Of a stretch of 64,000 nucleotides of DNA, positions 7,536 through 53,668 are shown piece after piece. Made by a program: the position numbers and the translations under genes. The first letter of the stretch is position 1. Every line of letters starts with the position of its first letter. The stretch is from assembly GCA_004431415.1 (NCBI GenBank), contig QPMI01000005.1, positions 310,001-374,000 on the forward strand, given 5' to 3'. The notes below the pieces were generated by a model. It ran no database searches and was not told the origin of the DNA. It saw nothing but the letters and a program-made list of their open reading frames with translations. This DNA comes from Cyanophora paradoxa CCMP329 (taxonomy: Eukaryota > Plantae > Glaucophyta).

Positions 7536-7575
<40 letters not shown>

Positions 7576-14011: not shown

Positions 14012-14895
14012 CTAGAAGACGGAATCGAACCCGGGCGCGTCCGCGTTCTGGCCCCGGGGTGGCGTCGCCCCCGACGTGAGGTCCTCCAAGTAGAACTTGG
14101 CGGTCTGTTTGCAATTAGATTAGATTAGATTAGATCGCCTTTTTAGATTAGTTCTTGCGGACCTGGGAGCGGATGAGCTTCTTGATGGCCCTGTAGGAGA
14201 GGGGGAGCTCCGCGAGGAGAAAGGCGGCGTAGAGGATGTTGATCGCCCGCTCGATCGGCGCCATCCGGGGCTGCGGGGGGAGGGGGAGAGAAGAAGTTGT
14301 AAGTTCCAGGGGTACGGGGACGGTTCAAAGCGGAGGGGGGGGGTACCTGGAAGTTGATGAAGAAGATGGTGAGGGGCATTTGGGTGAGGAGGGTCAGGAG
14401 GAAGTGCGCCGCCAGCTGCGGCACCTGTACCCGGCAGGGCGGGTGAGGTGGGGGGGGGGGGGGGGGGGGCGGGGTCGGGAGGCCGGGGGTGCGCGCCTTC
14501 TCTTGAAGATTGCCGGCGTACCCCAGATACAGGCGGCTTGCCTCCAGAAACGCCCAGGCAACGATCAGAATCGGCAGCACGTACCCCCACATGGAGCCCA
14601 CGTTCAGAGTCTCGACCTGGGCGCGTTCAGCTAGCCATGCGGCGGGAGGGTTGCGAGCACAGCGCACTTTGTAGGCCGCCATGATGCCTTGTAATATGAC
14701 CCAGCCGCAAGAGTAGTAGACGTTGTAATACAAGAACATCTGCAGAGGCAGGCGGGCGTTGATGCGACGGACGGGCGCGGGCAATGCTGCTCGCCGCACC
14801 TGCAGCCAGAGCGACGAGGCGATGTCCGTGTCTGCGGGTCGATTGGTCAGCCGAGCGGCTTGGCGCGGCACCGCCGCGCTGCGCACTGGCGACAT
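14012..14895 (-). CDS. TMEM17: TMEM17/TMEM216 family ciliary transition-zone membrane protein
   Basis: SSLWLQMFLYYNVYY...LEASRLYLGYAGNLQEKVPQLAAHFLLT signature; last exon TAKFYLEDL...DSVF*; start codon uncertain. Confidence 0.8.
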
Positions 14896-15399
14896 GGAAG
14901 CGGCGGGACGAGGGAGCGGGGGCGATAGCTTTGGACTGCGGATCGAGTGAGATGGATGCCGCGCGCTGCAGCGGCGGGCGTACATCGGGAAACAGCCTGT
15001 CGGAGACTTTCCTCAGCGCGTTGTCGACCGTGACTTCCAACCGAGAGCGCCGCAGCGAGTCGGCTGTCGTGCGCGGCCGCAGCCCGGCGGGGGCCGGGTT
15101 CACGTTCCTCCGGGCCGGAGTGAGCATCAAGCTAATGGCTCTGTGCGATTGGCCTGTTGCAGGCACGCCCGCGACGATCTGGGAAAGCCGACAACTTGAA
15201 ATCCGAGGCGCTCGCTCGCTCCACGCGGGCTCCGGAATGTGCCAGCTGCACGCGGAAGAGTCGTAGCTAACGGTGGGATGCTGGAGGATCGACTTCGAGC
15301 GCGGGAGCCTGGAAAAAAAGGCAAGGCAGCTGGGTACCGACGCGAAATCCGGCGGGCTTCGAAAACGCACTTCACGCATCGGAGGAGATATCGGAGGAT

Positions 15400-16602
15400 A
15401 TGGCGGTTCGCCGCGCCGCTTGCTTGCCTCGCGCCGGGGCTGACTCGCGCCGCAGACCGCGGACGCCCGCGAGCTGCTCCGTGCGAGCCTCTCGCAGCGC
15501 TCCGAGAAGATCGACAGCCCGCTCGTGAAGAACGGAAGCTGCGTGGTCTGCAAAGAGCCGATCAAGACACAGGCAGAATGGCTGGCGCACGCATCGAGCA
15601 GGGCGCATCGGCAGCGGATAGAAGCGCTACAGCAGAAGAAGGCTCAGATGCAGGCCAAGCAGGCGATGCCGCCTCCACCGGCGGCGAAGCAGGCGATGCC
15701 GCCTCCGCCTCCCCCAGCGAAGCGCAGCTCTCCAGAGGCCGGCCCGGCGTCCGATGGCAGCGACGCGAAGCGCAGTCGCGCAGCGCCGCCCAGTGCGGGG
15801 CTCTCTGTGTTGGCTGCGTACGAAGACGACGACGGTAGCGATGAGGAGGAGGACGAGGAGGACGAGGAGGCCGCAACGGCGCGATTGGCCTTCGAGATGG
15901 CAAAAGCGAGAGCCGCCGCGGCGGCCGCAGCGGCGGCGGAAGCAGCAGCGAAGCCCGCACCGGCCGCGCCGGGCAAACCAGCCCTCCCCGCGGGCTTCTT
16001 CGGTGCAAGCCCGCGCTCCGAGCTTCTAGGCCGCAAAGCTGAGGGCCGCATCGCGCCGCAGACGATAAGGAGGCGGACGCGCGGGCCCGGGGCGAGGAGA
16101 CGCCTGAGGAGCGCATGGCGAAGGAGCTCGCGGAGTTTCAGAAGGTCCGCGGTTCCAATCCGCCGAGGCGCCGTTCCTGACTCCGCGTACCCCGCAGGCG
16201 ATGCGCGGGGCGGAGCTGGAGGCTCAAGAGGTTCGGGAGGCGGATCTCGAGGAGGAGTGCGCCGCACCGCACCCCCTCCCCTCCCGCGGCCCTGTACCCC
16301 CACCCGCGCTCAATCGCGTACCCCCAGGTACGAGGAGCGGGAGGCGGACGAGGCGATCGAGCAAGAGCGACTGGCTTCCCAAGTGGACCGACTGAAGCAG
16401 AGCGCGGCGGAGCTGAAGGCCCGGCTCCAAGCTGCGCGCGACGCCAGGCCCGCCGTGGTTCGCGTACCCCGCCTTCCGCCGCCGCTGTACCCCTCCCGCC
16501 CCGTCGCCGATCGCGTACCCCACTCAGAGCGTGGGGGAGGAGGACCTGGAGGGGGAGGAGGATGCGGATGACCTGCTGGACTGGCGCAGGAAGCGCATTT
16601 AG
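15400..16602 (+). CDS. ZNF830: ZNF830/CCDC16-like zinc-finger spliceosome-associated protein
   Basis: MA|TADARELLR...KIDSPLVKNGSCVVCKEPIKTQAEWLAHASSRAH zinc finger, LPAGFF|DD motif, C-terminal DDLLDWRRKRI*. Confidence 0.8.
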
Positions 16603-19743: not shown

Positions 19744-22700
19744 TCAGAGGGCGGCGCGGAACTCGTGTGCGGCGAGCTCGGGGGCGTGTCCGAAGCGCTC
19801 CAGGAAGGCCCCCACGAAGGCCGGCCCGCTGTACCCCGTCAGGGGGGACGGGGGGCGGGGGGGGGGGGGGGGGGGGGGGAACAGGCGGCTCGCCCGAGGA
19901 CGCAGGTGGCGAGGACGACGAGGCGGACGCCGGCGCGCCGCGCCACCAGCCGCAGCGCCGCCACCTGCCGCGGCGCGCGCGCTTGAGTGAGGGGCGGCGC
20001 GGAGCGCTCTGTTGTATGTTAACCGGCTCCGCTCGCTTGCTCGCTTGCGTGCGGGCGTCAGAGGCGGCGCAGAAAGCTGTGCACTCTCTCGCGCGCTCGC
20101 TCGCTCGCTCGTCCCCCGGGGTCTCAGGGCCTCATCGGCTAACGGAATATGTTTACCGGCCCCTCTCGCTCGCTCGCTCGCTCGCGGCCGCCCGCCCTCC
20201 GCGCACCTCGCGCCCACCCTCCTGCCCCCCCACTCCTCACCTCCCCCCCCACCTCCCCCCCCGCACCTCGCCGAGGGTGACGCCGCCGACGAAGACGACC
20301 AGCGCGGCGCGCCTGGCGGCCGAGGAGGAGAGGGCGGCCGGCGGGGCGTCCGGGGCCGGCGGGAGCTCGACGGAGGGCCCGGGGAGCAGCCCCAGGGCCG
20401 ACTCGAGGGCCGGCGGCGCCGCCCGCCACGTCGGCGGCCGGCACTTCAGCGCCTCCTCCACCAGCCGCACGCTCACCGGCGCGTACCTGCGCTGTATCGT
20501 TAGACTGGGTGGGGCTATTTTTGGAGTGGAACGGCGTACCCCGAGTGGACGTAGGAGGCGTCGGTCGGGTTCGCCTCGTCGGTTATCTCGGACGTGAGCC
20601 GCAGCTGCGGGGCGGAGAGGGGAGGCGGGGAAGCGTGAGGGGTACGGCATCTCTTCCGGCGTGGACAGGGGGCGGGGGGAACGGACGAGCTTGCGGAGGG
20701 CGGGCCACGGGGAGCGCGTGCCCGGGTGCCGGACCAAGAGCCCCGCCTGGGGGGTACACGCTCGAAAAGGAGCGGAACGAGGCGTCGCGGCGTTGCGCGG
20801 GGTACCTTTTCCGCGTTCTTGAGGCTCAGCACGCACTCCAGCCCGTACGTCTGCGGCGGAGGGCGGGGGTATGCGTCTCTCTCGAGTCTCGGGGAGGGGT
20901 ACGTGGGAGAGGGGGGGGACGGGGCGCACGAGGTAGAACTCGTAGCGGACGGCGTCGAACTGCTTCGGCTTGAGGCCGCCCTGCGTCACTGGGCGCGCGG
21001 GGGCGTGGGCGCGCGAGCGGGGCACGAAGTGCTTAGGCGGGGGAGGTGGGAGAAGAGGGGGCCGCCTCTCGCTCTTAGAGCTTATCTTGTGGCTCCTTTA
21101 GCCTCCTAAATCGCACATCATTTTATCTTTGAGCTTTAGCTTATCTCCGAGCTCTTCTAGCTTCCTAATCGTATATCATTTCGTGTTCGGTACCAGAAGG
21201 GGCGGGGGGGGGGGGGAGCAGGGGGGGGGGGGCGCACGGGAGCAGAGGGCGGCGTAGCGGAGGGCGGAGGGGAACGGTCGCCCGTCCGCGAGGATCTCCT
21301 CCAGGTACCCCAGCGCCGCCGCCTCCTCCCCCTGCCGCTCAGGTGAGGAGCTCGGGGCCCGGGCGCCCTCTCCCGGGGAGATCTTTCTTTCCTCTTCTCC
21401 CACCCCTTCCCTTCCCTTCCCTTTCTTATCCCCCACTCTACCCCCCCCCCTCCCCCCCTCCAGCTCGCACCTGGACGGCGTCGAGCTCGGCGGCGAGGCG
21501 GAGCTGGAAGCGGCGCGAGGCCGTCAGCTGCCCCAGCTTCCCCGCCACGTGCGTGTCTGCCCCCGCGCCCCGCCCCGCCCTCAGCGTCCAGCGGAGCGGG
21601 GGGATGGGGAGGGGGGTACGCGCACGGAGCTCGAGGGCCTTGTGCTGCTGCTGGGCGCTGGGGAGCCGCTTGATGTAGTCCCTCATCGCCGTCAGCGTCG
21701 CCGCCGAGTGTCGCTCCTGCGCGGGCGGCGCCTGAGGGGCGAGGGGCGGGGGAAAGTGCGGAAGGGAGCGCCCGGGGGGTACCTCGTAGACTTCCTTGAG
21801 GGAGCGCGCGCGGGCGTTCAGCGCCGGGCCCACAGCGACGAAGCTCACGTCCCGCAGCTGCGAACGAAGCTCAGGTGAGGTGGGGGGGGGAAGGGGAGGG
21901 AGGGGTACCTCGCCGTGGAGCGTGCCCGCCGCGCCGCCCGCCGCCGAAGCGCCCATCAGCGCAACCTGCGATCCGGCGGGTCAGCGAGGGAAAGAAGAGA
22001 AGCCGCGGGGGAGGGGGCTACGCGCCTTGATGCGGCGATGCTTGGCTTCGGGCGCCGGCGCCTGCCCCGGCTGGCCCCCCGCCGGCGGCGGCGGCCCCGG
22101 TACCCCCGCCGCCTCCGCCCCCACCTCGACCGCCCCCGCCGAGAGCCCGCAGCACTCGTCTATGAGCGCCTGGGGGTACGCGTCGCGAGGGGCGTGCGTC
22201 AGGAAGGGGTGAGGTACGGCGGACCTCGTACGACATCGGCGTGACGAGAGGGGTTACGAAATCCACCGCGCGATCCAGGATGAGCGCCTGGGGGGTACGC
22301 CCTCACGGAAGGGAGGTCGAGGGGGGACGCGGTTCGAACCTGATCAAGGTCGCTGGGCTTGCTCGCCTCGTCCCCCGCCTCGCCCTTGCGAGCCGCCTCG
22401 GCCTGGGCGGGGGACGCGGTTCGGGGAGGGGGTACAGGGTTCCGGAGGGGGGTACGGGCTCACCTCCTCTTCGGAAAGGAAGCGGGGGCGGGGGGCGGCG
22501 AATAGGGCGGCGAGGGAGGGGGAGAGGGGCTGGGGGGGTGCGGCCGCCGGCGCGAAGGGGAACGAGAAGCGCGCGGCGGCGCTGGCGCGGGCCCGCTCCC
22601 TCTCGTACCCCCGCTCCACGCGGTACCCCGCCCAGAGATCGGCCACGATCTGCGGGGAAGGGTCGGCCGCCCGGTCGCCCGCGGATCGAATCCGGACGAA

Positions 22701-23703
22701 GGCTCGCCTTCGCGCGCTCGCCCTTGCCCCGGACGGCGGGTACAGGGCCGAACACGTCCTCGAGAGCCATTAGAGCCTCCGCGACGAACACGCAGCTCGA
22801 TTGGTCGCCGTCCTGCACGGCGCGGTCGTTACGGGGGTAGCGAACCGGAGAGCGAAAAGGGGGGGTACCAGGAAGAGCTCGCGGGTCCACTCGACGCTGT
22901 GCTCAAGCGAGATCAGGTCGTCCGTGTAGGGGACCATCAGCTGCCACCGGTACGTCGCCACGTCTGCGGCGGGCGGATCGACTGGAGCGCGGGGTACGGG
23001 ATTGAAGGGGGGTACGGCGCACCGCAGGAGACGCCCTCGTCCTCGAAGATCTGCTCGCAGAGGGGCGTGGCGCGCGGCACGAACGCGACGGCGTAGCTCT
23101 TCGCGAGGCCTTCCGCGTTGTGCACCTTCACGTGCTCCGCGATCATCTGCGCGCCGCGCCCCGCGGCAGGCTGTCAAAAAGTTTGGCACCGTAGAGGACA
23201 GGATTCGCTGGCGCGCACGCGGGCGTTCTGGACGGTGGGGCGGGCGATGTACAGGATCCGCTGCAGGTCCGTCCGCGGCTCCTTCGTCTCCATGTGGTAG
23301 AATGGCGGCTCGACCCCGTGGTCCTGCGCGGTCGGGCCGCGGTCGGCGGAACGGCGGCGGGCGCGGAGCGGAGCGGAGCGGCGAGGGTCAGTGCACACCT
23401 GCAGCATGCTCTTCTCCGCGACGAGGCTGAGGAGCGACGTGAGGGTCGGATCGATGACCAGCGTCTTCTTGTCGCCGAACTGCGGGCCGCGGCGCACGTC
23501 AGGACCGGTCATTCGCGCGGTTCACGCGGTGGGTGCGGCGTTCGCACGTCATCGAGGATCCGCGCGAGCTCCCGCCGGACTGCATGAGAGCGTGAGAGAG
23601 GGGCACGGGGCGGCGCCGGCGGGCCCGAGGCTATCGCAGCTAAGCAGCGCGCACCGCGTGACCGAATGCGGTCGCTCGTCGTGCCCGCGGAGGAGCCGCT
23701 CAT
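19744..23703 (-). CDS. VPS33: Vps33 (Sec1/Munc18 family; HOPS/CORVET)
   Basis: Spliced N-terminus RRELARILDDFGDKKTLVIDPTLTSLLSLV; FVPRATPLCEQIFEDEGV; DDLISLE; LILDRAVDFVTPLVTPMSYE; QGGLKPKQFDAVRYEF; LVVFVGGVTLGE. Confidence 0.9.
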
Positions 23704-23735: not shown

Positions 23736-25796
23736 ATGGCGGCAAGCGCGTTTCAGCTCACCGCCGCGGCCCCCGCCGCGCCCAGCCGCGTGCACGCGGG
23801 CCACGCCTTTAAACTGCATACCGCCTGCTGTAGCACGGCCGCCCCTGCGGCGCGTCAAGCCCAGCCGCTCGTCCGCCCTAGCTTCCTCGGCCAGTGGTCC
23901 TTCCAGGCCGACCGCTTCATCCTGCAGCAAAGGACGCGCGCTCTTCCCCCGGCGATTGGCGCCGGCGGCGTGGCCGGCTTGCGGGCTCAGGCGAACGAGG
24001 TGGTCGTCGCGGACTCGGACTGCGCGCTGGACCCCGTGATGGCCGAGGGCGTCCAGATTGTCGAGTACGCGGACCTGCTCGCCGGGCGGGACATCACGGA
24101 ACAGATCCGCCTCGCGTACGGCGAGGGCGGCCTCGGGGTGCGCGGCGCGCTGCTCCCGGGGAGCCGCCGAGCTCAAGGGAGCGCTTTCGCAGATCCTGCT
24201 CGTGCGGGGCATCCCCGGCTTCTCGGAGAAGCGGAGCCGCCTCCTGCCGCTGGCCCGCGACCTCGCGCGGCTCCCGCAGGGAGACTTGGACGCGCTGGAG
24301 CGCCCGGAGTTCAAGTACTCCATCGGCTGGTCGCACGGGAAGGAGCGCCTCGAGGGCGGCGTGCGTCCTTGAAACGTTCCCGCCTTCTTGATTCCGCTCG
24401 ACTCCGCGCGCGCTCCCGTCCGCGCCGCGGCTGACGCGTTTCCCGCCAGCGGCTGGACACGGCGAAGGGGAGCTTCTACGCGAATCCGATCAGCGACGAG
24501 CCTGCGCACGACGCGGACGCGGCGACCGTCGCGCGGCACATCGATCAATTCGCGGCGAACGTGTGGCCCCGGAGCTCGCTCCCCGACCTCGAGGCAGCGT
24601 TCAAGGACGCCGGGGGCACGCTGGTTCGTTCGTTTGCCAAGCCCCGCCCGCGGATCAAATGTGGACCCGCTGACCTTCGTTCGCGAAGGTCGAGGTGGGG
24701 CGCCTGATCCTGGCGGCCGCGGACGGGTACGTGCGCCGGGAGATGGGCGCGGCCTACGAGCCGGGCCGCCTCGCGCGGGCCGTCTCGCACCGCGAGTGCG
24801 CCATGGGCCGCCTACGTGCGCTTGTACCCCCTCGAATTCCGAGCCAGTCGAATCCTGATTTGATCCGCAGTGCACTACTTCCCGAGGAGCCGTGAGGAAC
24901 TCGAGAGCGGCGCCGCGGCTGGGCGCTGGTGCGGATGGTGCGCCGTACCTCCCATCCCGCAACACGCCGCGTACCCCTCCCTCCACTCATTCCCCCCAGG
25001 CACACCGACCACAGCGCCATCACGGGACTCTACTCGGTGCGCTTGCCGTACCCCCCGCTCGGGGCCCGCCCCCTCACCATCCCTGTTCACCCCCCCCTAC
25101 CCCCTTCCGGTCCCGCCCAGGCCCTATTTTTGGACCCCGAGGGCCGCCCCGTACCCTGCCCCGACCCCTCCGCCGGCCTCTACATTCGAAACCGCGCGGG
25201 TGAGGTCGTGAAGGTCCGTACCCTGTACACCTCCGTCCCTTTCCTTCCTTCCGATGCGATACCCCCGCAGGTCGCCATCCCTCCGGACATGGCCGCGTTC
25301 CAGGTTCGAATCCGACGGGGACCCTTTTCCAGTCCTTCGCGGCTCAGATCCCGCTCAGATCGGGGAGAGTGCCCAAGTCCTCAGCGGCGGCGCCCTCCGC
25401 GCCACGCCCCACTGCGTTCAGGTACCTTCCACCCAGTACCGTGTACCCCCTCTGCATCTTCTTTCTAACGGGGTACAGGGCCCGTCAACCGTCGAGTGCG
25501 CCGGCATCTCCCGCAACACGCTCGCTGTCTTCGTCCAGGTAAGGAGGGTACATGATTTCCTTGACCAGAGGCGGCCACTTGACCGGCACCCCGCAGCCGC
25601 GATGGAACGAGCCGATGTCTGCGCCGGATGGGATCGACGCGCGGTCCGCGCCCCCTACCCCCGCCCGCATCTTCACTACCCCAACGCGCCGCCGTCTGAT
25701 CTGAGGCCCTGCAGGGCGGTGCGGGTGGGGGCCTGGCGACCGGGCCAGAGTTTCGTAGAGTTCGCGCACGCGACGGTCATGAACGGGTACGGCTAG
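23736..25796 (+). CDS. 2-oxoglutarate/Fe(II)-dependent dioxygenase with probable plastid transit peptide
   Basis: SIGWSHGKERLEG, KGSFYANP, WCGWHTDHSAITGL (HxD), LRATPHCVQ (distal His), RNTLAVF; N-terminal about 85 aa MAASAFQL...PSFLG is Ala/Ser/Arg-rich with almost no acidic residues. Confidence 0.85.
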
Positions 25797-40000: not shown

Positions 40001-40062
40001 GGCGCTGTAAGCTTCTTTATATGTGATTATATTTAGAGGAGACGATAGCCTGGCTACAAGGG

Positions 40063-41150
40063 TCAGAGGAGGCCGGGGAGGATGGCGGCGCGGTTTTTGG
40101 GGTACCCCTCGACCTTGGCAAGGTACCAGGCGTGCGTCTGGCGGGCCGTGTGGCCCAGGTTGATGGAGACGAAGGCTAGGCAGGAGTGGAGGCAGGGCCG
40201 GGGCAGCGCCAGGCATAGGGCCGCGTAGATGAGGACCTCGGCCGCGTAGTGGGGGCACGAGAGAAACTCGAACCAGTCGCCCCGGGGTACGGCGTACCGC
40301 GCGGCGGTGCCGGGCCTGGGCGCGCCGCCGGGCCGAAGGCCGGCTAGGATTCGGTGGGCGCGGCTCTGCTTTAAAGAGGCGTACGAAAAGAGGAGGACGG
40401 AGAGGGCGAGCCGGGCGAGGAGGGGGTACGGGAGGGCGGCGGGGGAGGGGGCGGGGAGGGCCCGGAAGCCCCAGGCGCCGACCCACTCGGCGGGGGGTGA
40501 GAGGGGTACGAAAACATAGAAGCCGACGGCTGCGAGGGGTATGAGGAGCGCCGCGGTGCGAGCGGCGCGAACGAAGCGGACCGGCGGCGAACTTCACGAT
40601 CCCCATGCGGCGGGGCGTGTACACGTGGACGAATAGGCTCTCGTAGAGTCGGCGAAGTACCTGGGCCTGCGCGCTCGGCTCAGCGTCGCGGGCGGGGGGC
40701 GTGGCACGGGCGGGCGGGCGGCGCGCCAGGATCAGGAGCTCGCAGACGAGTACCTGCGCCGCGAGCTCCGCTGTGCCGTCGCCGGCGCGCTGCAAAACGC
40801 GATCGGCGGTCTCCCGAGCGCTCAAAGGCGCGCACCTCTCGTGGACCGGCCGGGAGGAGAGCGAGGGCCGCGAGCGCAGCCATGCTGCAGCCGGAGCCCG
40901 CGATGTACATCAGAATCCAGCCGGCTCTGTAGCTGATGCGTATCCAGGCAAGGGGACCGCTTGGCCGCTCCTCAGCGAAGCTCCCGACAACGACGCCCGA
41001 CCCGGCCTTGCGCGCGTCCGAAGGCCGGGGCGCGGTCTCCGTGATGCGGTTCCATGCTGGAGAGACCGCTTTGGCCGCGTAGAGAGCGATCGCGGTGGCC
41101 CAGAAAGCCTGCACCGCCCAGGGCGCCCAGGCGGGGTCGACCTCGACCAT
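40063..41150 (-). CDS. Polyprenol reductase (SRD5A3/DFG10 family)
   Basis: QVLRRLYESLFVH, GDWFEFLSCPHYAAEVLIY, NLGHTARQTHAWY...YPKNRRAILPGLL*. Confidence 0.85.
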
Positions 41151-41851: not shown

Positions 41852-42076
41852 TCTCTGCAGCTGTCTCATCCAAGCTCCCGCGGCGACCCCGCAGCTGCAG
41901 CCCACGTTCAGGATTCGCAAAGCTCTCATAGCATAGCATTATACTCTTTTATCTGATCTGAATACGTTACTCGCAGTCTATACAGAGAAAAAGCAGCCTG
42001 CCCGGGCCGCCGGGGCCGAGGCCGGACGAGGGAAAAAGCTGGAAAAAGCGGCGACAACGTTCGCGAACGTCTTGAA

Positions 42077-43541
42077 TCACCACGCCTTCAGGTAGCGGTA
42101 GTACGAGCCCGCGTACGTAGCGGGCCCCACCTCCCGCCCGCCCCGCGTTTTCTGCGGGGGGGGCTGCGTGGGTACAAGACGGCAGCAAAGAACGGGGTGC
42201 CGCACCTTCTGCGGGGGGTCGAACCGCTTGACGGTGCTGCGGAAAACGCTGGAGTAGCGCTGCGGGGAGCGCTCGACGGTCCTTGCCAGGGTTGCCTTCA
42301 CCAGCGAGCTCTCGGGCTGTAGGGGGGTATGGGGTATCGGAATGCGGAAACGGGGATAGAGGGGTACCACGGACCGCGAAGTCGCGAACATCGAGTGGGC
42401 GCTCCTTGCTGCGCCTCGTACCCTGCTGCTCGGCGCTCTAAAGAGGGGAGTACTCGCGTGAGGTCGGGGCAGGGGTGCACGTGCAGAGAAGGCTAGGGGG
42501 TCGGACCTCGTCTGGAAAAAACTTCTTGCTCGTGAACCGGGGCGCCCGCGCTGACCGCGGCGTGAGCGGGGTACGCGAAGCGGTGGGGGAGGGGGGGGGG
42601 GGCTGAGGTAAGCGCACGCATCGCGCTGCCCTTCTGCAGCCACTGCGAGGCCTCCTTGTCCGGGTCGTAGTACCCCAAATCGTGCCCGGACGGGGAGACG
42701 GTCTGCGAGGGGGATAGAAAGTCAGGGACCGTGAGGAGGGTACACGAAATGAGCGGACGGGCCTTCTCCCAGGCAGGCTTCTGGAAGCGGGCCCCGCAGG
42801 AGGCGAAGCTGCTTAGGGGCCGCGTGGGATCCGCCAGCGTGATCGCCCTCCTAGGATGGCGTCGGCGCGGCCGCGGCGGCGCCCCCGACGAGAGGCAGAG
42901 GGGGTACCGGTACTGCTCGACGCGGTAGGTCCCCGGGGCGATGTGGTCGGGTACCCATTCGCCGGGGGCAGCGTGCCTCGAGAACCGCGGGCTCTGACTG
43001 TAGAAGACGCTGCGCGAGGGGGAAACTTCTCAGCGCCCGTCCCCGCACGCCCGGCGCCCCCGCCCTCCCCGGCCCCGGCCCCGAGCCCCCCGCGCGCCTG
43101 TTGCACGAGTGCCGGATGGGGTCCCACTCGACCTCTCTGGCGATCGCCGGGTACTTGGACGCGATGGGCGAGTCCTCGTACATCTCATCGGCCCCGTCCC
43201 CGACCGGCGAGCCGGAGAAGCGGCCTGTGGCCGAGAAGAAGACCTGCGCATGCGGAGGCGCGCGAGGCTCGGGACGGGGCGGCAGAGCAGGAGGCGGAAC
43301 GACGGCGCACCGGCTTCTGAGTCTTGGTTATCTTCTCCCGCCGCCGCGGAGCCAGCGCCGCCGCTTGGCTGCAGGGCGGTCCGGTCAGCAGGGAGCTGCT
43401 TGGGCGGGGAGGTGGTAGGGCGTACCAGGCGCGGCAGTTGTTTGCGTGCCACAACCCTCGAGGGGTCTTGGGCAAAGAGCCGCTGGCATCGAAGTCCGAG
43501 TGGCCACCCTCGTGCAGGTCCTCATCGTGCGACGACTGCAT
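42077..43541 (-). CDS. Hypothetical protein with PG-rich, SHIPPO-like repeats (possible ciliary microtubule-binding protein)
   Basis: Exons contain IAPGTY, DLGYYDP, VGPATY motifs with SxFxSxxxRF-type segments (SSVFRSTVKRF); exon boundaries only partly resolved. Confidence 0.5.
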
Positions 43542-44139: not shown

Positions 44140-47100
44140 ATGCCAAACACGTCGGCGATGGCCGCGGCCAGCAGGGTGGTGCCGGTGAACAAGGATGAGA
44201 CGAGAGGCGGCGACGACAGCTCCAAACCCTCGAGCAGTGTAGCTGCAGCTGCAGCATTAAGCCTTCAGCTGCCCGAGGACGCTGAGCATGAAGGCCGGAG
44301 CGCGATTCCGCAGGTGCCTACATGTACATGAACAGCTGCTTGCGCGCGCAGTTGACGTTGCAGCTGCAGCTGCAGCCTGCCATCAGCCCGCGTGCCTGAC
44401 CTCCCCGACCCCCAGAGCAGCGCCAGCGCACCGCGGTCCAAGCTCGGCGCCCGCATATGCATTGCAGGTTCCCACCCCGCAGCTCGTTATTCGACGCACT
44501 GCTGATGGCGGCGCCCGTCAGAGTCGGTGGCGTCGGTGGCGAGCTCGAAGTACGGCATGAAGCGCGCGCAGGACCTGGCGCAGCTGCGCTCGTACGTCGT
44601 CCCCGTCGACTCGGCGCTGAGCGTCCTCGACAAGGACTACAAGACCCTGCAGAACTATGCCGCCCTCGTGCGAGCCTGCCCGCCTGCGAGCCGCGCGACG
44701 ACGGCGGCCGGCCGCGGGCCGCGAGCCGCCGACCGCGCCCCGCCCGCCCGCAGATGACCTATCTGGTTTTCTACGTCATCTACATCCTGGTCCTGTTCAT
44801 GCAGCGTGGTAGGCGCTCGCTGCGCGTGCCTCCGGATCCCCGCGCCGCCTGCGCGCCCTAACGGCAAGCGTGCGCGCTCCCGCAGACACGCAGCAGGCCT
44901 ACAACATACGGAGCGGGATCACGTCCGACCTGGCGAGGACGGGGTACGACTCGGTGCACGACGGCCCGAGCTTCTACGCGTGGGCCAAGGCGGGCCTGCT
45001 GGACTACACCAACCGCGACGGGAACGGTGTGCGGCGCAGAAAACGATGAAATGGCCTCTAGCTTGAAGGCAGCTCACTTTGTTAACATTGTATTTATCGC
45101 GCAGCGTTCATCTCGCGGATGAACAGGATCATCGGGGGCGTCGTCATCTTGAACTACCGCGTGGGGCTGGAGGACTGCGGGGGCCAGCCCCGCTTCAAGC
45201 TCTTCTACCCCGCGTGCACCGCGCACGACGTGGCGGCCTCCAGCATCGACGTCTCCAGCGCGACGGCCGAGCAGCAGGCAAGGCTCGTGCCGCTCGCGCG
45301 CGGCCTGCTCGGCCTCAACGCCAGCGTGCCGGACTCGGACGTCTTCGCCACCTTCTCGTCACTGGTCAACTCCGGAACGTTCCCTCATCCCCTCGGGTGG
45401 GTCGGCGCGCAACCGTTCTTGTCGCCCGCACGCGCTCACGCGCCCGCCCACCCGCCCGCAGGCTGGACTACGACAAGACCTTCGGGGCAAACGGTGCGGC
45501 CGCTGCGCGCTCGAATGCCATCCCGCCGGCGCCTCACGCGCGAGCGCTCGCTCGGCAGTGGTCGCAGTGCTGCCGGAGGTCCACTCCAAGGAGCAGGCCG
45601 AAACCTTCCTCTCCATCGGCGAGGCGCGCTCGCCGCCTCCAGAATCTTGCGCACGCGCCCCTGCAATCGAGCACGGCGTCATTTAAATGCGCACTCGCGA
45701 TCGGCAGGTGATGGGGGCGGTGGGGGGCGCGACGCGCGCCGTGGCGGTGCGGGTGACGACCTACAACGGGCACGCGCGCAGCCTGGCCTTCACGGAGCTG
45801 CTCTTTACGTGCGCGCCGCCCCCGCCCGCCCCGCCCCGGCCCGGCTCGCTTCCGGCCCGGCTCGCTTCTGGGCGCGGCCGACGCCGCTCGCCTCGCGCCG
45901 CGCAGCTTCACGACGGGCGGGCGCGTTAGAACGAAGGTCGCGAGCGAGATCATCCGAGTCGAGGCGCGTCCCGCCCTGCCCCGCCCCGTCAGAGCTTCGG
46001 CCTTGCCGGGCTCTGAAGAGAATGCGCGGGCAGCTGTACAGCCTCACGGCGGACAAGGTCCGGCTGGCTCTGGAGATCTTCGTCTTTGCCTACGTCCTCT
46101 ACTGGCTCGCCCAGTGGGTGCACCGCCGCCAGGCCGGGCCGCCGCCTCGAGCTGGGCTCCGGATCCGGCGGCGATTATAATTAAGCGCCGGCCGGCAGGT
46201 GTACCGCGCGGCGCGGGCGCACAGGCGGCGGCGCCTCGGGGAGGAGTTCAGCAGCCTGGTGGCCCTCGTCGACCTGGTGGACCTGCTCCTGTTCCTCGTC
46301 GTCATCGTCATGTGGATCTCCATCGCGTACAGCATCCAGACGGAGGTCCCCACCCTCAAGTTCGCCGTGCGCCCACCCGCCCGCCCGCGCGTTCGCGCTC
46401 TTCTCTGAATCTGAACTGCTCTGACTTCGAACTGCTCTGTTTTGCGCCCGTGGCAGTACACGTTCGGTGGGGAGTCCTTCGCCGAGGATCTCAACACAGT
46501 CGTCACCCTCTTTAACCTCTCCCGTGCGCCTTATGATCATGACACTAGTACTAGGGCCCAGCCCGAAGCAAGCTCGAGCGGCTGCAGTCCGGCCTGAGAC
46601 CTCGCCCCGCCCCGCCCCGCCCCGCCCCGCGGCAGAGGTCTACGCGTACAGGACGAAGGTCTACTCGCTGCTGACGGCGATCAACCTCTTCCTGGGGATG
46701 ACGCGACTGCTGCGGCTGCTGCACTTCCAGGGGCGCATGTCGATCCTCACGCGGACGCTGGTGCGGGCGGCGAGCGACCTCTCCCACTTCGCCCTCCTCT
46801 TCGCCGTCGTCCTCGTCAGCTACGCCTGCATGGGCCAGGTCCTCTACGGCCACGCTGGTGCGCGCGTGAGCAGTCAGCTGTAGGCAGCTGCAGGCAGGCT
46901 CTCCTTCCCGCCTTCGCATCAATGACGTCGCGCGTGCGGGCGTGCGGGCCGGGGCGCAGTGCAAGACTACAGCGACGCGGGGAGCGCGCTGACGAGCCTT
47001 GCCAAGATCATGGTCTCCGCCCGCGAGGACTACGACCAGTGCGCGGCGCTGCGCGCGCGAGCGCCGCGCGCCGTCGTAGTACTCTTTCCCGACCCGGCGG

Positions 47101-48362
47101 GCGGACCGCCCGGGCGCAGGATCAACGAGATCGACGTGATTAGCACCGTCTTGGTGCGCCCCTCCCCACCCACCGGCCGCGGCCCCGCCTTCTTCGTCTC
47201 CATCTTCTTTTTCTGAGCCGCGCGCGTGCCCCCGGCCCGTCGTCGCCGGCCGGCGCCCGCAGTTCTTCTGGACGTTCGTGATCCTGATCGCCTACATCCT
47301 CGTAAACATGTTCCTCGCCATCATCATCGGTGCCCCCGCGCCTCGAGGTGCCTCGGCGCGAGCGCGAGCGCGGGCCGACACGGGCCGGGCGGGCGGGGCC
47401 CGGTCGTGCAGACACGTACGGGGACGTGCGCGACGAGGCGGCGGCGAGCTCCGAGAGCCTCTTGGCCGAGCTCGTCACGGTCTCCCGCATCCACTTCCGC
47501 GAGGTCGTCGTCCGCTCGGGCCGCCTCCTCTCCGCCGGCCGCTGGCGCCCGCCCGTCATCTCCGACCGCCAGGCCCGCCCGCCCGCCCGCCCGCGCCGCT
47601 TGCCTCTCCTATGCACGCTAACGCTGCTGTAGGTGCGCGCTGTGCTGAAGGAGCTGCGCGCGGGCGCGGAGGACGGGGTCGTCTCCGGCCCCGCCTTCGT
47701 CGAGGCGCTGCGGGCGCGGCACCCGCACCTGGACGACTCGTTCCTGTACTACTGCCTCGAGCGCGTCGGCCGCTCCCTCGACGACGATTCCTTCTGCCCC
47801 GACGAGGTGCGGGGCGGGGCGGGCCGGGCCGGGGCAGGCCTAGGATGCATATGGACATGAGACGGGGCCGGAGCCAGTCTGACGCCGGCGGGCGGGCGTG
47901 CAGCAGTCGGGGGCCGGCTCGCGGCGGGAGTCGCTGGCGCCGAGCGGCGCCGAGTCCTCTTCGGGGGCGGTCGCGATCGCGGAGGGGAAGCCGCCCCCCG
48001 TCCCCCGCTTCGCCTCGGCCTCGACCGCCGGCCGCGTCCGCGCCGGCGCCGCCTCGGGCGCTACCGGCAGCCTCGCGCCACGCAAGAGCGTGCGGAAGCG
48101 TCTCGAGCTCCACGACGCGGTGAAGCAGCTGCAGAACGGCAACCGGGACCCGGCGCAGCTGAGCGCCAAGCAGCGCATCAAGGAGCTCGTCGCCTCCCAG
48201 CGGCTCGCGCAGGAGCGGCTCGCGCGCATGGAGGAGGCCCTTGCGGGGATCGGCGAGGCGCTGGAACGCATCCCGGCCCCCCGCTGGGCCGAGGGCGAGG
48301 GCGAGGGCGAGGGCGAGGGCGGTCGGTCTGGAGCGGCGTGGGCAGCCCCAGGGGCGAGCTAA
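44140..48362 (+). CDS. Polycystin-2 (PKD2/TRPP)-like cation channel
   Basis: S1 YLVFYVIYILVLF, NRIIGGVVI and TRAVAVRVTTYN extracellular-domain motifs, RLLRLLHFQGRMSILTRTLVRAASDL, FFWTFVILIAYILVNMFLAIII|DTY, C-terminal coiled coil; stop TAA 48360-48362. Confidence 0.85.
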
Positions 48363-50727: not shown

Positions 50728-51095
50728 GAGTCAGAAAGTGCGTTGGCACACTTTTGCGGGGCTCGAAACTTCGCCTTCGGCATCGCTGCGCGGGCTGCGC
50801 TTCTTCGGCGCCGCGCCCAGGCTGCGGTCGGGCTTGACTTCTTCCGAGGCAGCAGGGACTGCCTTCCGCTTCCCTCCGCGCGCCATGAACGCGCGCGAAT
50901 TGTCTAGAGCGCACGTACGCGCGCTTTGTGCTGGCAGCTTTCCACGCGCTTCGGCGCGGGCGAGAGCCGACGCGTATAACGTACGAAAGCAGACCTGCCG
51001 ATTCTGAACGAGGTGCCGTGCGTCAACTTGGAGTTTGCGTACCCAGGACCGGCATCAAAACTCGGCACGCTCGGCGATCTTAGAGGCGCTCCGCG

Positions 51096-53668
51096 ATGAA
51101 GAAGGTGCGAGTGCGTGCGCCGGACGACCTCACCCTCGCTGACTGGTCGCAGCCTTCGGCAGCTGTCATTGCGGCAGGCGCCGTCGCGGCGGTGGCTGCG
51201 TTTGCAGTCATTCGCTCTCTTCGGAAGCCGGCGAAGAAGTCTTCGAAGGCCGCCGAGCCCGCCGTCAAAGCATCGCAGCCAGCCCAGCCGAAGGCCGCCG
51301 AACAGGCCGCTCCAGTCCAGGCACCGGCCGCGAAGAAGCGGGACGAGTGGGTCAAGCAGGAGATTGCGAAACACCCCGTGATGCTCTTTTCGCGCAAGGT
51401 CGGCTGCAGGTGCGCAGCAGTGCCGGCCGGAGGCTACAGCGCGCGCCGCGGCCCGCGGGCCGCCGCCGCGGGGACGAGGCCGACGCGGCGCGCGCGCCGG
51501 GGCGCGCGCAGGTTCTGCACGAAGCTGAAGGATCTGCTCAAGTCGCTCGGCGCGGCGTTCGAGGCGCGCGCCGGTTCAGCGCCCCGCGGCGCTTCGCGGC
51601 GCGGGGCGGGGCGGGCCTCACGCGGGGCGCAGGTCTGCGACATGGACGAGGTCGAGGACGGGCCGGAGATCCACGCGGCGCTCATCGCCCAGACCAACTG
51701 GAAGACCGTCCCCTGGTCCGCCCGCCCCGCCCCGCCCCGCGCCCCGCCGTGGTTCGCCCGGCGGCCGAGCGCGCGGGGCGCAGCCTCTTCATCGGCGGGA
51801 AGCTCATCGGCGGCTGTGACGACGCGTGCGGCCGGCCCCGCGCTCCGCCCCCGCCCCGCCCGCCATGCCGCTGCGCGGCTGAGCCGCCGCCGCGCCTGCA
51901 GGCACAAGCTGCACGAGCAGGGGAAGCTGGTCGACGCGATCCGCGCGGCAGGCGGCAAGGTGGCCGCCTCCGCCGCCCCGGCCCCGGCGCCGGCGCCGGT
52001 CCCGGCGGCTGCGCCGGCGGCGGCGCCGGCGTCGAAGCGCGACGAGTGGGTCAAGCAGGAGATTGCGAAGCACCCGTGATGCTCTTCTCGCGCAAGGTCG
52101 GCTGCAGGTGCGCACGCCGCTCGAGCGCACGTCGCGGCCCGCGGCCGCCGCCGCGGGGCCGAGGCCGACGCGGCGCGCGCGCCGGGGCGCGCGCAGGTTC
52201 TGCACGAAGCTGAAGGATCTGCTCAAGTCGCTCGGCGCGGCGTTCGAGGCGCGCGCCGGTTCAACGCCCCGCGGCGCTTCGCGGCGCGGCGCGGGGCGGG
52301 CCTCACGCGGGGCGCAGGTCTGCGACATGGACGAGGTCGAGGACGGGCCGGAGATCCACGCGGCGCTCATCGCCCAGACCAACTGGAAGACCGTCCCCTG
52401 GTCCGCCCGCCCCGCCCCGCGCCCCGAACCCGCCCGGCGGCCGAGCGCGCGGGGCGCAGCCTCTTCATCGGCGGGAAGCTCATCGGCGGCTGCGACGACG
52501 CGTGCGGCCGGCCCCGCGCACCGTCCCGCCCGACCGGCCGCCGGGCGGCTGAGCCGGCGCCGCGCCTGTAGGCACAAGCTGCACGAGCAGGGGAAGCTGG
52601 TCGACGCGATCCGCGCGGCAGGCGGCAAGGTCGCCGCCCCGCCGCCCCAGCGCCGGCGCCGGCCCCGGCGGCTGCGCCGGCGGCCGCGCCGGCTCCCACC
52701 CCCTCAAAGCCCGCCGACGACGATGTGGCTACCCCCGTCACGGTGCGCAGCGGGGCCGTACCCCTCCCCCGCGTCCTGGCGCCGGTTCGAATCCCGCCGC
52801 AGGCCGCCCTTGCGACGGTCGTCGAGGCGGTCGAGAAGGCGGCGAGCGCGGGTTCGACTCCAGCCGGGACGCCTTCCAAGGCGGCCGCGCCGGAGTCCGG
52901 CCGCGCCGCGTGGGTCAAGGAGCAGGCGAGCCGGCGCGGACTTCGATCCCGCCCGTCGCGCCTCTGACCGTGTACCCCCCACCCCTCCCCGCAGATTGCC
53001 AAGCACCCCGTGATGCTCTTCTCGCGCTCTGTCGGCTGCCGCTTCTGCACCAAGCTCAAGGCACGCCGTACCCCCCCCCCCCCGAAATCCTCTCCTCCCA
53101 GTGTACCCCGACGCCAACCCGTACCCCCCAGGGCCTGCTGAAGTCCCTCAACATCCCCTTCGAGGCCTGCGAGATGGACCTGGTGCGCCCTGTACCCCTT
53201 CCTCTCCTAGTCCCCCTTGCGGCGGGGTACAAGATGAGATCCGGTCCTCGCCTGCGCGATGAGCCGAGCTCCCGGCGGGCCGAGCCACCGCCTTCGACTC
53301 AGACTTTAGGCTGTGCGCCCCCCGCGAGCTGAGCCGTTCCGCCCCGCCCCGCAGGAGGAGGACGGGCCGGAGATCCACGCGGCGCTCGTCGCCCAGACCA
53401 GCTGGAAGACCGTCCCCTGGTCCCCCCGCCCCGCCCCGCCCCGCCCGCCCCCGCCGTGGTTCGCCCGGCGGCCGAGCGCTCGGGGCGCAGCCTCTTCATC
53501 GGCGGGAAACTCATCGGCGGCTGCGACGACGCGTGCGGCCGTTCCCCACTCGTCCCTTCCTTCAGGCCCCCTCGCCTTCTCTGCTCTGACTTCGCTCGGC
53601 GCAGGCACAAGCTGCACGACGAGGGCAAGCTCGTCCCGGCGGTCAAGGCCACCGGGGCGAAGCTCTGA
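51096..53668 (+). CDS. Triple-domain dithiol glutaredoxin (CRFC x3) with N-terminal hydrophobic anchor and C-terminal AKL
   Basis: Each domain: PVMLFSRxVGCRFCTKLK...WKTVPCLFIGGKLIGGCDD; 1-nt loss in a C-run at about 52073 breaks the frame (probably a sequencing indel). Confidence 0.88.
51342..52700 (+). repeat. Recent about 700-bp tandem duplication (glutaredoxin domains 1 and 2, including introns)
   Basis: GACGAGTGGGTCAAGCAGG at 51342 and 52041; exons and introns nearly identical. Confidence 0.92.

Follow-up and report, generated by a model that had tools for sequence, protein, structure and literature searches.

We analysed 64,000 nt of the forward strand of Cyanophora paradoxa CCMP329 (Glaucophyta; GCA_004431415.1, contig QPMI01000005.1, positions 310,001-374,000), and this whole stretch is called the window. 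Many introns of its genes (Table 1) contain one short word, GTACCCC. No publication on this motif was found in the literature. All GTACCCC counts refer to this one 64-kb window, in which the gene models are mostly predicted, and onset distances are counted from predicted ATGs. The authors of the Cyanophora genome call gene models hard to build (PMC6704402). We used a purpose-built gene finder that is blind to the motif, and it recovered 15 of 15 RNA junctions. In the 4CL-like gene, 15 listed introns of 53-82 nt are skipped in RNA-like contigs (3 runs, 2 studies) and are unskipped in the DNA run used for comparison. Introns that bear the word are missing from the RNA contigs of two studies, that is, they are spliced out of mRNA. 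RNA-contig exon pieces at 39495-39604 and from 39855 onward flank 4CL-like introns 19-20, and in the PG-repeat gene the RNA exon pieces 41731-42151 and 42206-42316 agree with predicted introns 8-9. The polyprenol-reductase-like model is uncertain between 40384 and 40530.

Table 1. Genes and gene zones of the window with their GTACCCC content (window positions; class A introns are described in the text)
Feature	Position	Strand	Content
Hybrid histidine kinase	90..11037	+	42 predicted introns, often long, AT-richer; one copy, 5293
TMEM17-like	14271..14587	-	ATG 15127, stop 14012; intron 6 (14271-14346) with 2 sense copies, introns 1-5 without sense word; antisense exonic copies 14518 and 14581 are Gly-Tyr codon pairs
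ZNF830-like	16145..16527	+	ATG 15400; introns 7-9 with 1, 2 and 3 copies, introns 1-6 with 0
VPS33-like	20605..23022	-	ATG 23512, stop 19744; introns 3-17 form the block, 11 with the word; introns 1-2 and 18-21 without sense word; five antisense copies exonic
2OG-oxygenase-like	24816..25476	+	ATG 23736; word from intron 5 (1,080 nt), introns 1-4 free
Cyclin-H-like	26509..26874	-	distal introns with the word
SK-channel paralog 1 (SK1), motif block	30428..32072	-	onset at the homolog of SK2 intron 5
SK-channel paralog 2 (SK2), motif block	34073..35650	-	ATG 36435; introns 5 (785 nt) to 15; introns 1-4 free
4CL-like, proximal zone	36924..37734	+	ATG 36924; RNA joints and intron table
4CL-like, introns 1-5	37072-37130, 37157-37221, 37283-37345, 37450-37517, 37588-37669	+	CpG/G-rich, no intronic word
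4CL-like, interior, introns 6-18	37735..39495	+	53-81 nt; 12 of 13 with 1-3 sense copies
4CL-like, last two predicted introns (19-20)	39607..39856	+	without the word
Polyprenol-reductase-like	40099..40509	-	four sense copies, modelled as exonic (Val-Pro, Tyr-Pro pairs)
PG-repeat gene	42317..42907	-	ATG 43541; word in distal introns and exons
PKD2-like	44322..47216	+	15 predicted introns, all class A, no intronic copy
Glutaredoxin domains 1 and 2	51279..52638	+	685-bp tandem duplication; introns all class A, without the word
Glutaredoxin linker and domain 3	52743..53354	+	introns 11-14 with 1, 1, 3 and 1 copies

Abundance and exactness of the word

In the whole window, GTACCCC has 123 matches on both strands when compared to 5.5 +/- 2.4 in shuffles, and the hexamer GTACCC has 165 matches against 19 expected. 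An earlier note on this DNA described the motif as intronic and mostly sense, and our models bear this out. The predicted introns (~65 nt) hold about 77-78 sense copies and 5 antisense copies. Dinucleotide shuffling of each intron yields only 4.2 sense copies (0.19 antisense), so the enrichment (~18x sense, ~27x antisense) is not explained by local C-richness. Some copies counted in the note turned out to be exonic: 37575 in the 4CL-like gene, a Val-Pro pair within Met-Val-Pro-Leu, and those of the polyprenol-reductase-like gene. The word is also exact. No single-base variant of it exceeds 7 copies in comparison with 77 for GTACCCC itself, and all variants are at least 10 times rarer.

The strand bias reported in the note is present. 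The sense to antisense ratio in introns is 77:5 (15:1), and the shuffles predict 4.24:0.19 (23:1; P = 0.4). The sense bias is no greater than the C/G skew of the introns predicts, and this ratio test gives no sign of the orientation-specificity beyond composition that is expected of an intronic splicing enhancer. Three of the five antisense intronic copies are GGGGTACAG at the 3' splice site. GTACCCC is palindromic in its GTAC core only. The full palindrome GGGTACCC is not preferred, with 4 cases among the 165 hexamers of the window, and palindromic hexamers in general are over-represented within the window. The spacing of copies in the window shows no 10-bp or nucleosome-scale periodicity. 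The preceding base is C in 57% of copies, which makes a CpG (CGTACCCC), and T in 21%.

Interior introns carry ~10 copies of the word per kb. Nearly half of the copies (35/77) start at most 12 nt from the 5' splice site, at offsets 1, 5 and 7-10, and 13/77 end 3-8 nt ahead of the 3' splice site. GTACCCC is therefore found where an intronic splicing enhancer is expected, near the splice sites of truly spliced introns. Clustering at intron ends largely tracks the locations of C-runs; the GTA-capped share of C-runs is 45% at the 5' end versus 28-33% elsewhere. Late introns with 0, 1, 2 and 3 copies number 37, 36, 11 and 4, which is Poisson-like, and the 5' and 3' copies within introns are independent of each other. 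Splicing proceeds without the word in 42% of late introns, in early introns and in whole genes.

The word is also favoured in codons. Coding sequence contains 13 sense copies versus 2.5 expected from synonymous-codon shuffling and 17 antisense copies versus 3.5, an enrichment of ~5x in each orientation. Val-Pro pairs are written GTA-CCC, with the rare codon GTA, in 8/24 cases (P = 2e-6). Gly-Tyr pairs are GGG-TAC in 17/18 cases (P = 5e-8) and GGC-TAC in none. The antisense exonic excess is this Gly-Tyr rule, which is equally strong in early exons and in genes that are free of the motif (kinase, PKD2, Tim17-like).

Onset downstream of the ATG and two intron classes

The earlier note stated that the motif switches on 0.55-1.1 kb downstream of the start codon. 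Motif-blind models reproduce its onsets at 0.54 kb in the TMEM17-like gene, 0.79 in ZNF830, 1.09 in 2OG, 0.84 in SK2, 0.87 in 4CL, 0.64 in polyprenol reductase, 0.63 in PG-repeat, 0.86 in F-box and 1.66 in glutaredoxin. Density along genes is not flat. In motif-bearing genes, the word occurs in 4/49 introns that start less than 700 nt from the ATG and in 53/98 introns beyond (Fisher P = 2.6e-8). By within-gene permutation, the first four introns per gene include 4 motif introns when compared to 16.4 expected (P < 5e-5). The onset stands, but the abrupt switch does not: it is a ramp from ~300 to 1,000 nt from the ATG, and the hexamer density per kb climbs from 0 (0-200 nt) through 1.9 (400-600) to 8 (1,000-1,200). 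The closest exonic hexamer to any ATG lies at 387 nt, and the exclusion is respected in all compartments and orientations. The densest GTACCCC block in the window is the 4CL-like interior, with ~1 copy per 90 bp; the distribution along this gene (none in introns 1-5 and 19-20, 12 of introns 6-18) gives Fisher P = 7e-4.

The onset coincides with a change of composition that is confined to introns. Intron C/G skew rises from 0.10 to 0.33-0.35 at ~700 nt, and intron CpG density falls from ~0.165 to ~0.117 per nt. At codon third positions the skew is 0.00-0.11 and is unshifted across the onset. An orientation-blind or regional DNA process would not switch the skew of introns only. New here are this coincidence, the agreement of the sense bias with the skew, the preference for the word in codons, and the rejection of a branch site, a U12-type splice site and a longer mobile element.

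The window has two classes of very short spliceosomal intron, set by position in the gene. Class A introns are G- and CpG-rich. In every gene they occupy the initial ~0.7 kb downstream of the ATG, and some genes have no other introns; the note was right that early introns are a different class. Class B introns lie in the interior of many genes, are C-rich on the RNA strand and have twice as many C-runs, about a third of which are GTA-capped and so form the exact GTACCCC. The 5-mers that best discriminate late from early introns are all derived from the word (TGTAC 21:0, GTACC 69:3), and early introns have a GCAGC- and CpG-rich signature of their own. Core signals are common to both classes: the ends are GT/GC-AG, the 5' site is GTGCGC and the 3' site CGCAG, and CTGAY lies 15-29 nt from the intron 3' end. 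Motif-rich and motif-free genes and zones do not differ in intron density, which is 9-14 per kb of coding sequence. Phase 0 is found in 74% of motif-bearing introns versus 52% of the rest (P = 0.016), and a flanking G is also more common (exon position -1, 77% vs 61%; +1, 56% vs 35%). The intron table confirms that the word is nearly absent from the kinase, PKD2-like and LRR-RING genes. We rejected the word as a branch point: it lies mostly at the 5' end, CTGAY fills the branch window, and neither motif replaces the other. A U12-type intron (donor word at +1 and a TCCTTAAC-like branch site) was also rejected, as only 8/77 copies are at +1 and the donors are GTGCGC-like.

Paralogs show how the word behaves over time. 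SK1 and SK2 have 65% protein identity, and their 12 aligned intron positions are all shared, which dates these introns to before an old duplication. About 8-10 of the 12 shared introns are concordant (6 with a copy in both paralogs, 4 without in both), and the word begins at the same homologous intron in the two genes. Copies have moved between the 5' and 3' ends of introns that are otherwise unalignable. In these paralogs the word is maintained with turnover. The recent glutaredoxin duplication of ~700 bp that the note described is real (685 bp, 92-98% identity, 98% over 284 nt). The note took it for a natural experiment in which the motif appears to accumulate over time as a function of position. 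We read it as intron turnover and not as accumulation in place, because the motif introns of domain 3 are at other codon positions than the motif-free introns of domains 1 and 2. Introns 12-14 use three codon positions that are unused in domains 1 and 2, and introns 11-14 are all in phase 0. Introns 15-16 (53420-53604) correspond in position to the class A introns and carry no copy; at the two positions shared by all three domains, every intron is class A.

Possible roles of the word

Of the three options in the note, the best is still the third, a putative element of co-transcriptional splicing or elongation. We tentatively prefer to regard GTACCCC as a putative auxiliary RNA signal of a gene-interior intron class. 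It is observed that the word is exact, lies in introns and has an onset, at which the composition of introns only changes. From this we infer an action on RNA, help in splicing and a reason for the start point. GUACCCC would be read on pre-mRNA as a dispensable, additive helper signal, which may help to define tiny introns after the polymerase leaves its promoter-proximal phase. For early introns, promoter-proximal help may take over this role, or a different composition may be imposed on them. Enrichment beyond composition, placement near the splice sites, removal from mRNA and upkeep of the word in the SK paralogs count in favour of this reading. In plants, dispersed and additive signals separate promoter-proximal from distal introns within ~1 kb (PMC6374622, PMC3141229), and C-rich intronic tracts are read by poly(C)-binding proteins (PMC4797308). 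Several observations stand against the RNA reading. The skew predicts the sense bias, and antisense copies are equally enriched. The word is favoured in codons in both orientations, which a purely intronic RNA signal does not explain. Copy number is Poisson-like, many introns and whole genes splice without the word, and its clustering at intron ends largely follows the C-runs.

If the onset holds genome-wide, it would be an unusually sharp, sequence-readable boundary between promoter-proximal and interior gene parts. This opens, in a deep-branching alga, the questions of how very short introns are defined in GC-rich genomes, how intron content relates to promoter distance outside plants, and where the promoter-proximal domain ends. 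RNA-seq, methylome and nanopore data are already public for C. paradoxa. Gene prediction in Cyanophora could benefit from the word and the two intron classes, which could also guide transgene design.

The main rival of the RNA-signal reading is a word iterated at the DNA level, which we consider possible but unlikely. Transcribed gene interiors would favour GTACCC(C)/(G)GGGTAC in their duplex through an orientation-blind cause: repair or gene conversion with a sequence bias, or selection for a factor that binds DNA or chromatin. As the least constrained sequence, introns would then show the word most, and their C-richness would give the sense bias as a by-product. The similar enrichment in both orientations, the codon pairs that create the word, the Poisson-like copy number, the 5' exclusion in every compartment and the general excess of palindromic hexamers agree with this. 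A hyper-abundant short word that also occupies synonymous sites has a precedent in HIP1 (PMC4390886, PMC5861425). However, interior introns are C-rich on the sense strand in an intron-specific, strand-aware manner, which no orientation-blind DNA process can produce. The Gly-Tyr rule, being equal in motif-free genes, may be a separate, general codon-pair effect. Antisense intronic copies are few and mostly at the 3' splice site, there is no preference for the full palindrome, periodicity is not seen, and non-CpG cytosine methylation is absent from published data (PMC12344493). Rather doubtful is also a gene-interior mark, GTACCCC/GGGGTAC, read or written on DNA by a repair, recombination or chromatin system. 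In expressed genes this system would maintain 1-2 copies every 100-150 bp from the end of the promoter-proximal chromatin domain onward, and the mark would have the force to decide which synonymous codons are used and how new introns are composed.

It is improbable that the motif-bearing introns are a distinct, probably younger cohort, whose gain mechanism leaves GTACCCC and C-runs near the ends and gives few gains in the promoter-proximal zone. The positions and phase of the domain-3 motif introns in the glutaredoxin gene, its class A shared introns, and the phase 0 and G|G preferences would fit such a cohort. But with the word removed, the similarity of introns between genes equals that of shuffled controls (blastn-short top score of 28 vs 24-26 bits), k-mer lists contain no longer conserved word, and terminal inverted repeats and target duplications are not seen in these introns. 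Intron density does not depend on the motif, SK1 and SK2 share all aligned positions and yet copies moved, and intron gain leaves codon usage unexplained. A mutational or DNA-methylation footprint, with GCGC/GTGC turned into GTAC by methylation-linked decay in gene bodies or with GTAC/CC as a modification target, is disfavoured and highly improbable. The fall of intron CpG density and the frequent C before the word are in its favour, and in C. paradoxa CpG methylation reportedly increases towards the ends of expressed genes (PMC12344493). The GTGC/GCAC precursors proposed in the note are rare, however (GTGCCCC 3, GCACCCC 7 vs 77). The main change is loss of G and gain of C, not gain of T or A, and CpG observed/expected only moves from ~1.2 to ~1.1 after accounting for C and G content. 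Synonymous sites show no matching shift, copies cluster by the splice sites, and CpG deamination cannot turn GCGC into GTAC because the first change destroys the CpG. The modification target suggested in the note does not agree with published enzymatic methyl-seq, which finds CpG-only methylation with non-CpG sites at background and no N4/N6 methyltransferase domain (PMC12344493). The GTAC adenine is also outside the ApT context used by eukaryotic 6mA writers (PMC12695648). Hardly credible at all is a core splicing signal, that is, a branch site, a U12-type 5' splice site or a donor. In eight copies the GT of the word is itself the donor (offset 1), GTAC agrees with the local donor consensus GT[G/A/C]C, and 13 copies end just before the 3' site. 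There is a loose resemblance between GTACCCC and the U12-type donor GTATCCTT, and the minor spliceosome of the species is reported as unusual, but only 77 minor introns are reported genome-wide (PMC10639083). Moreover, 69/77 copies are not at +1, RNA-supported donors are upstream of the word, the canonical CTGAY is equally frequent with and without it, and 45% of copies are so close to the donor (at most 12 nt) that no branch can form there.

Intronic splicing enhancers of short GC-rich introns include G-triplets in vertebrates. Like these and the C-tracts bound by PCBP (PMC4797308), GTACCCC is short, repeated, on the sense strand and near both intron ends, and C-runs are a large part of its signal, as in C-tract enhancers. 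Unlike them, it is far more exact (GTA and at least four C), position-dependent, absent from whole genes and favoured in codons. HIP1 (GCGATCGC) of cyanobacteria is a short word 15- to 300-fold over-represented, whose function is debated (PMC5861425, PMC4390886). Both words are dispersed at about gene-scale density and may both favour synonymous sites; in the window the excess occurs in both orientations in introns and exons, but its antisense exonic part is the Gly-Tyr rule, which holds in motif-free genes too. HIP1, in contrast, is a full palindrome, genome-wide, bacterial and linked to orphan methyltransferases; a palindrome with a cognate methyltransferase is not what we see in the window, where GGGTACCC is rare and published cytosine methylation is CpG-only (PMC12344493). 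Unlike HIP1, GTACCCC has a palindromic core only, is concentrated in introns of eukaryotic gene interiors and follows the transcript strand through intron skew. Introners (Micromonas, Aureococcus and others) span ~100-200 nt or longer, resemble one another over extended stretches and often have target duplications. The Cyanophora introns resemble them in carrying a sense-oriented repeated sequence in many gene bodies, and differ in having nothing in common beyond the 7-mer and C-runs. A longer mobile element was rejected on sequence similarity: without the word, top blastn-short scores equal those of shuffled controls, and no longer k-mers are shared. Intron positions point both ways, being copy-specific for the motif introns of glutaredoxin domain 3 and shared throughout between SK1 and SK2.

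The RNA-signal reading is close to plant intron-mediated enhancement (IME/IMEter), in which introns within ~1 kb of the transcription start differ in composition from later ones and short signals, dispersed over the introns, act redundantly and additively (PMC6374622, PMC3141229). Unlike in plants, the Cyanophora word, known here from sequence, is one exact 7-mer that marks the distal class. The host is a glaucophyte with ~65-nt introns, and its early class has its own GCAGC/CpG signature. As in plant IME, the promoter-proximal introns of the window contain other words than the distal ones, and the change falls near 1 kb.

Gene models and frequency of GTACCCC

The published genome of Cyanophora paradoxa has a GC content of 67.6%; its introns number 9.2 per gene and average 86 bp in length (PMC6704402). 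In the 4CL-like gene, 15 listed stretches of 53–82 nt were skipped by RNA-like contigs from three runs of two studies, and the same stretches were not skipped in a DNA run of this organism. Once the alignment ambiguity was resolved, all 15 RNA-supported introns turned out to be GT-AG or GC-AG, five of them with GC donors. In most eukaryotes GC-AG introns make up about 1%; among all predicted short introns of the window the share of GC donors is ~22%. Our gene finder was trained on the 4CL-like gene and then iterated. It used coding periodicity, the open reading frame, minimal splice-site matrices and intron length, and intron content was left unmodelled. The finder recovered 15 of the 15 RNA junctions and, within strand territories, produced 18 models with 217 introns; those predicted in the PG-repeat gene agree with further RNA pieces. 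Start codons are predicted, and distances are counted from the predicted ATG, not from the transcription start site. A protein search at the exon level, with the first LRR exon as query, led to Cyanophora gene models present as protein-only records. Joined coding sequences were used solely in our statistics scripts, and the gene names therefore derive from the labels of the earlier note and from recognisable motifs of the predicted proteins.

Positions of the features discussed in the text
Feature	Position	Strand	Remark
4CL-like region	36800-42799		compared with RNA-like contigs
GC donors, 4CL-like introns	37157, 38079, 38388, 38679, 38910	plus	RNA-supported
4CL-like RNA contig, extension	39855-40447	plus	overlaps a convergent gene
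Early introns (examples)	14617-14983; 51410-51901		very high CpG density
First LRR exon	17828-18337		used in protein search
VPS33-like second copy	~17054-17461	minus	between ZNF830-like and LRR-RING genes
Glutaredoxin gene	51096-53668		three tandem glutaredoxin domains
Ty3/gypsy-like retroelement	57415-63710	minus	reverse transcriptase and integrase motifs

GTACCCC was found 123 times on both strands of the window, while dinucleotide-preserving shuffles gave 5.5 ± 2.4; for the hexamer GTACCC the values are 165 and 19. Predicted introns contain 78 copies in the sense orientation (on the transcript strand) and 5 in the antisense orientation, exons contain 13 and 17, respectively, and 8 copies lie in unassigned DNA. 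When each of the 175 non-kinase introns (13.9 kb) was shuffled separately with its dinucleotides preserved, 4.2 sense copies were expected against 77 observed, and in the 51 most C-rich introns 3.2 against 55. Because the per-intron shuffles give far fewer copies, local C-richness does not explain the excess. Thus, the word reported in the earlier note is real, with stronger evidence than could be offered there, and the shuffled-intron control proposed in it leaves the enrichment unexplained by C-skew. Among intronic 7-mers only poly-C ranks higher, and no single-base variant of GTACCCC has more than 7 intronic copies. The same note had offered, as one option, a mutational footprint of GTGC/GCAC changing to GTAC. 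The counts argue against this, since the proposed precursors GTGCCCC and GCACCCC occur in introns only 3 and 7 times, compared with 77 copies of GTACCCC.

The 5' onset and the two classes of introns

In the RNA-verified 4CL-like gene, introns 1–5 are free of the word, 12 of the following 13 contain it, and it is absent again from the last two (P = 7e-4). The same was observed across the 12 motif-bearing models: the word is present in 4 of 49 introns that start less than 700 nt from the ATG and in 53 of 98 that start beyond (P = 2.6e-8). Only 4 motif introns fall among the first four of each gene, when 16.4 are expected from within-gene permutation (P < 5e-5). In genes whose length ranges from 1.1 to 3.8 kb, the first motif-bearing intron lies at 490–1,080 nt; the boundary is therefore fixed relative to the 5' end. 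Counted in all compartments and both orientations, the density of the hexamer per kb is 0 at 0–200 nt, 1.9 at 400–600 nt, 4.5 at 600–800 nt and 8 at 1,000–1,200 nt, after which it stays at a plateau of ~5–8 and declines beyond ~2.2 kb (rate ratio 6, P = 1e-13). The onset is thus a gradual ramp. The distances given in the earlier note are reproduced by our gene models, but its wording that the motif "switches on" does not hold. A depletion in the last two introns is suggestive by eye and not significant (7 versus 8.7 expected, P = 0.28). Intronic copies are essentially nil in the kinase, PKD2-like, LRR-RING and Tim17-like genes, the first three of which had already been described as motif-poor. 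The exonic hexamer nearest to any ATG is 387 nt away. The copies in the window show no 10-bp periodicity of the kind expected for nucleosome rotational positioning, and no clear long-range period.

The composition of introns changes across the onset. The fraction of G declines from 0.33 to 0.23 while that of C grows from 0.41 to 0.47, CpG per nt drops from ~0.165 to ~0.117, and the (C−G)/(C+G) skew rises from 0.10 to 0.33–0.35. Over the same distance the skew at third codon positions remains within 0.00–0.11, and introns of the motif-free genes are low in skew from end to end. Hence the switch concerns introns alone and follows the transcript strand, which argues against a regional mutational bias and for either selection on RNA or a separate origin of these intron sequences. 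Early introns are also marked by GCAG words (GCAGC occurs 35 times, versus 3 in late introns). CpG density is very high in the early introns of most genes, and their donor (G)UGCGC and acceptor GCGCA(G) are near reverse complements.

The predominance of the sense strand reported earlier is also seen, at 15:1 in introns; a special strand bias is not, as composition predicts 23:1 (P = 0.4). The antisense words are in excess as well, GGGGTAC with 5 intronic copies versus 0.19 expected from shuffles and GGGTAC with 9 versus 0.84. Relative to shuffles, the antisense enrichment equals that of the sense word, and the sense bias is secondary. Three of the five intronic GGGGTAC copies, a small number, are GGGGTACAG at an acceptor.

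Position of the word in introns and exons

GTACCCC is concentrated at intron ends. Of 77 copies, 35 start at offsets 1–12 from the donor (offsets 1, 5 and 7–10 are used, 2–4 and 6 never), and 13 end 3–8 nt before the acceptor. C-runs of at least 4 nt are more frequent in interior introns than in early ones (29 versus 15 per kb) and are more often preceded by GTA (31% versus ~7%). Near the donor 45% of C-runs have GTA, and elsewhere 28–33%. The preference of the word for intron ends follows, in part, the placement of C-runs. Copies per interior intron are Poisson-distributed and 5' copies are independent of 3' copies, so that no individual copy is obligatory.

Both classes of introns, the early G- and CpG-rich and the interior C-rich, share the donor G[T/C]GCGC and the acceptor CGCAG, core splicing signals that are typical of this genome. 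CTGAY peaks 15–29 nt before the acceptor equally often with and without GTACCCC, which rules the word out as a branch site. Nor does it define a special class of donor, U12-type included, because just 8 of the 77 copies begin at +1. Three further roles were rejected. A CpG-free helper offsetting erosion of CpG splice sites does not agree with the donor +4/+5 positions (CG), which are conserved almost as well in introns that carry the word as in those that lack it. The idea that intron ends pair via the self-complementary GUAC core does not agree with the independence of 5' and 3' copies (P = 0.81). As for sense-antisense hairpins within an intron, 5 of 9 antisense copies co-occur with a sense copy, not above the base rate of 58%.

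Coding sequence contains 13 copies in sense and 17 in antisense orientation, where shuffling of synonymous codons within genes predicts 2.5 and 3.5, respectively. This excess is due to specific codon pairs. Of 18 Gly-Tyr pairs, 17 are written GGG-TAC and none GGC-TAC (P = 5e-8), although GGC is the commoner glycine codon, and GGG is preferred before no residue other than Tyr. This extreme codon-pair rule is valid in every gene of the window, including motif-free genes and early exons. In Val-Pro, the rare codon GTA precedes CCC in 8 of 24 pairs (P = 2e-6), and GTA-CCC is found only in genes that have the word elsewhere.

Palindromic hexamers head the list of words over-represented in the whole window relative to a maximal-order Markov expectation, for example TTCGAA (70 versus 32), TAGCTA, GAGCTC, TCTAGA, TTGCAA, GCTAGC, ACTAGT and CAATTG. 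The Ty3/gypsy-like retroelement has 13 matches of the hexamer in 7 kb on both strands, a modest excess about as in exons.

Intron history and possible meaning of the word

The SK-channel paralogs SK1 and SK2 share 65% of protein identity and 12 intron positions, and their first motif-bearing intron is homologous. Diverged intron pairs carry the word in both members at opposite ends, and in two pairs only one member has it. These pairs indicate that the word is maintained with turnover, via selection or continuing drive. In the glutaredoxin gene, domains 1 and 2 stem from a recent duplication of 685 bp, and domain 3 is older with another intron layout. Two introns at shared positions are of the early type in all three domains, while domain 3 has motif-bearing introns at three codon positions unused in domains 1 and 2, all in phase 0. 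The duplication used in the earlier note as a natural experiment is thus real, but accumulation of the motif in place is not what the intron positions suggest. The delayed onset probably reflects early-type introns inherited through the duplication, and the distal copies would reflect intron turnover rather than decay in place.

Four readings can be weighed. We give most weight, tentatively and with somewhat less than even confidence, to GTACCCC as an RNA-level helper signal of the gene-interior introns, because of the intron-only, strand-aware composition, the adjacency to splice sites, the exactness of the word and its maintenance with turnover. The codon-pair facts and the 387-nt exonic limit are at odds with an RNA signal confined to introns and leave a DNA-level reading alive. 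A word iterated at the level of the duplex, with which the codon pairs and the enriched antisense copies agree, is possible and stands second. That the motif-bearing introns are a cohort related by their gain is doubtful. They are more often in phase 0 (74% versus 52%, P = 0.016) and more frequently have G|G flanks. With the word removed, they are no more similar to each other than shuffled controls, and therefore they are not copies of a mobile element. Extra intron gains in motif-rich zones are ruled out, as genes rich in the motif and genes free of it have equal intron density.

A mutational or modification footprint is unlikely and comes last. Cytosine methylation in Cyanophora is confined to CpG, where it marks silent genes and repeats and accumulates toward the gene end when genes are expressed, and no N4/N6 methyltransferase domain was found (PMC12344493). 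Eukaryotic 6mA lies at ApT just past the transcription start in many lineages (PMC12695648), and the A of GTAC is outside this context. CpG-only methylation and the missing N4/N6 methyltransferase domain disfavour a modified base inside GTACCCC, and with it the earlier idea of GTAC or CC as a modification target; accumulation toward the gene end suggests that the onset may coincide with a methylation boundary. A literature search for the word and introns found no paper tying GTACCCC to Cyanophora introns, and the genome paper does not mention it (PMC6704402). New to this analysis are statistical proof for the 5' onset, the composition switch limited to introns, an explanation for the strand bias, the effects on codon pairs and the evidence that intron positions in the glutaredoxin repeats provide.

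Two further observations concern neighbouring genes. The first exons of the VPS33-like gene occur a second time, as a copy whose peptide reads ...GDKKTLV..IDPTLTSLLSLVAEKSMLQDHGVEPPFYHME.KEPRTDLQRILYIARPTVQNAR; this copy probably represents a pseudogene or partial duplicate. The RNA contig of the 4CL-like gene extends over the last coding exons of the polyprenol-reductase-like gene on the minus strand, and convergent overlap of this kind has been reported for the Cyanophora genome (PMC6704402).
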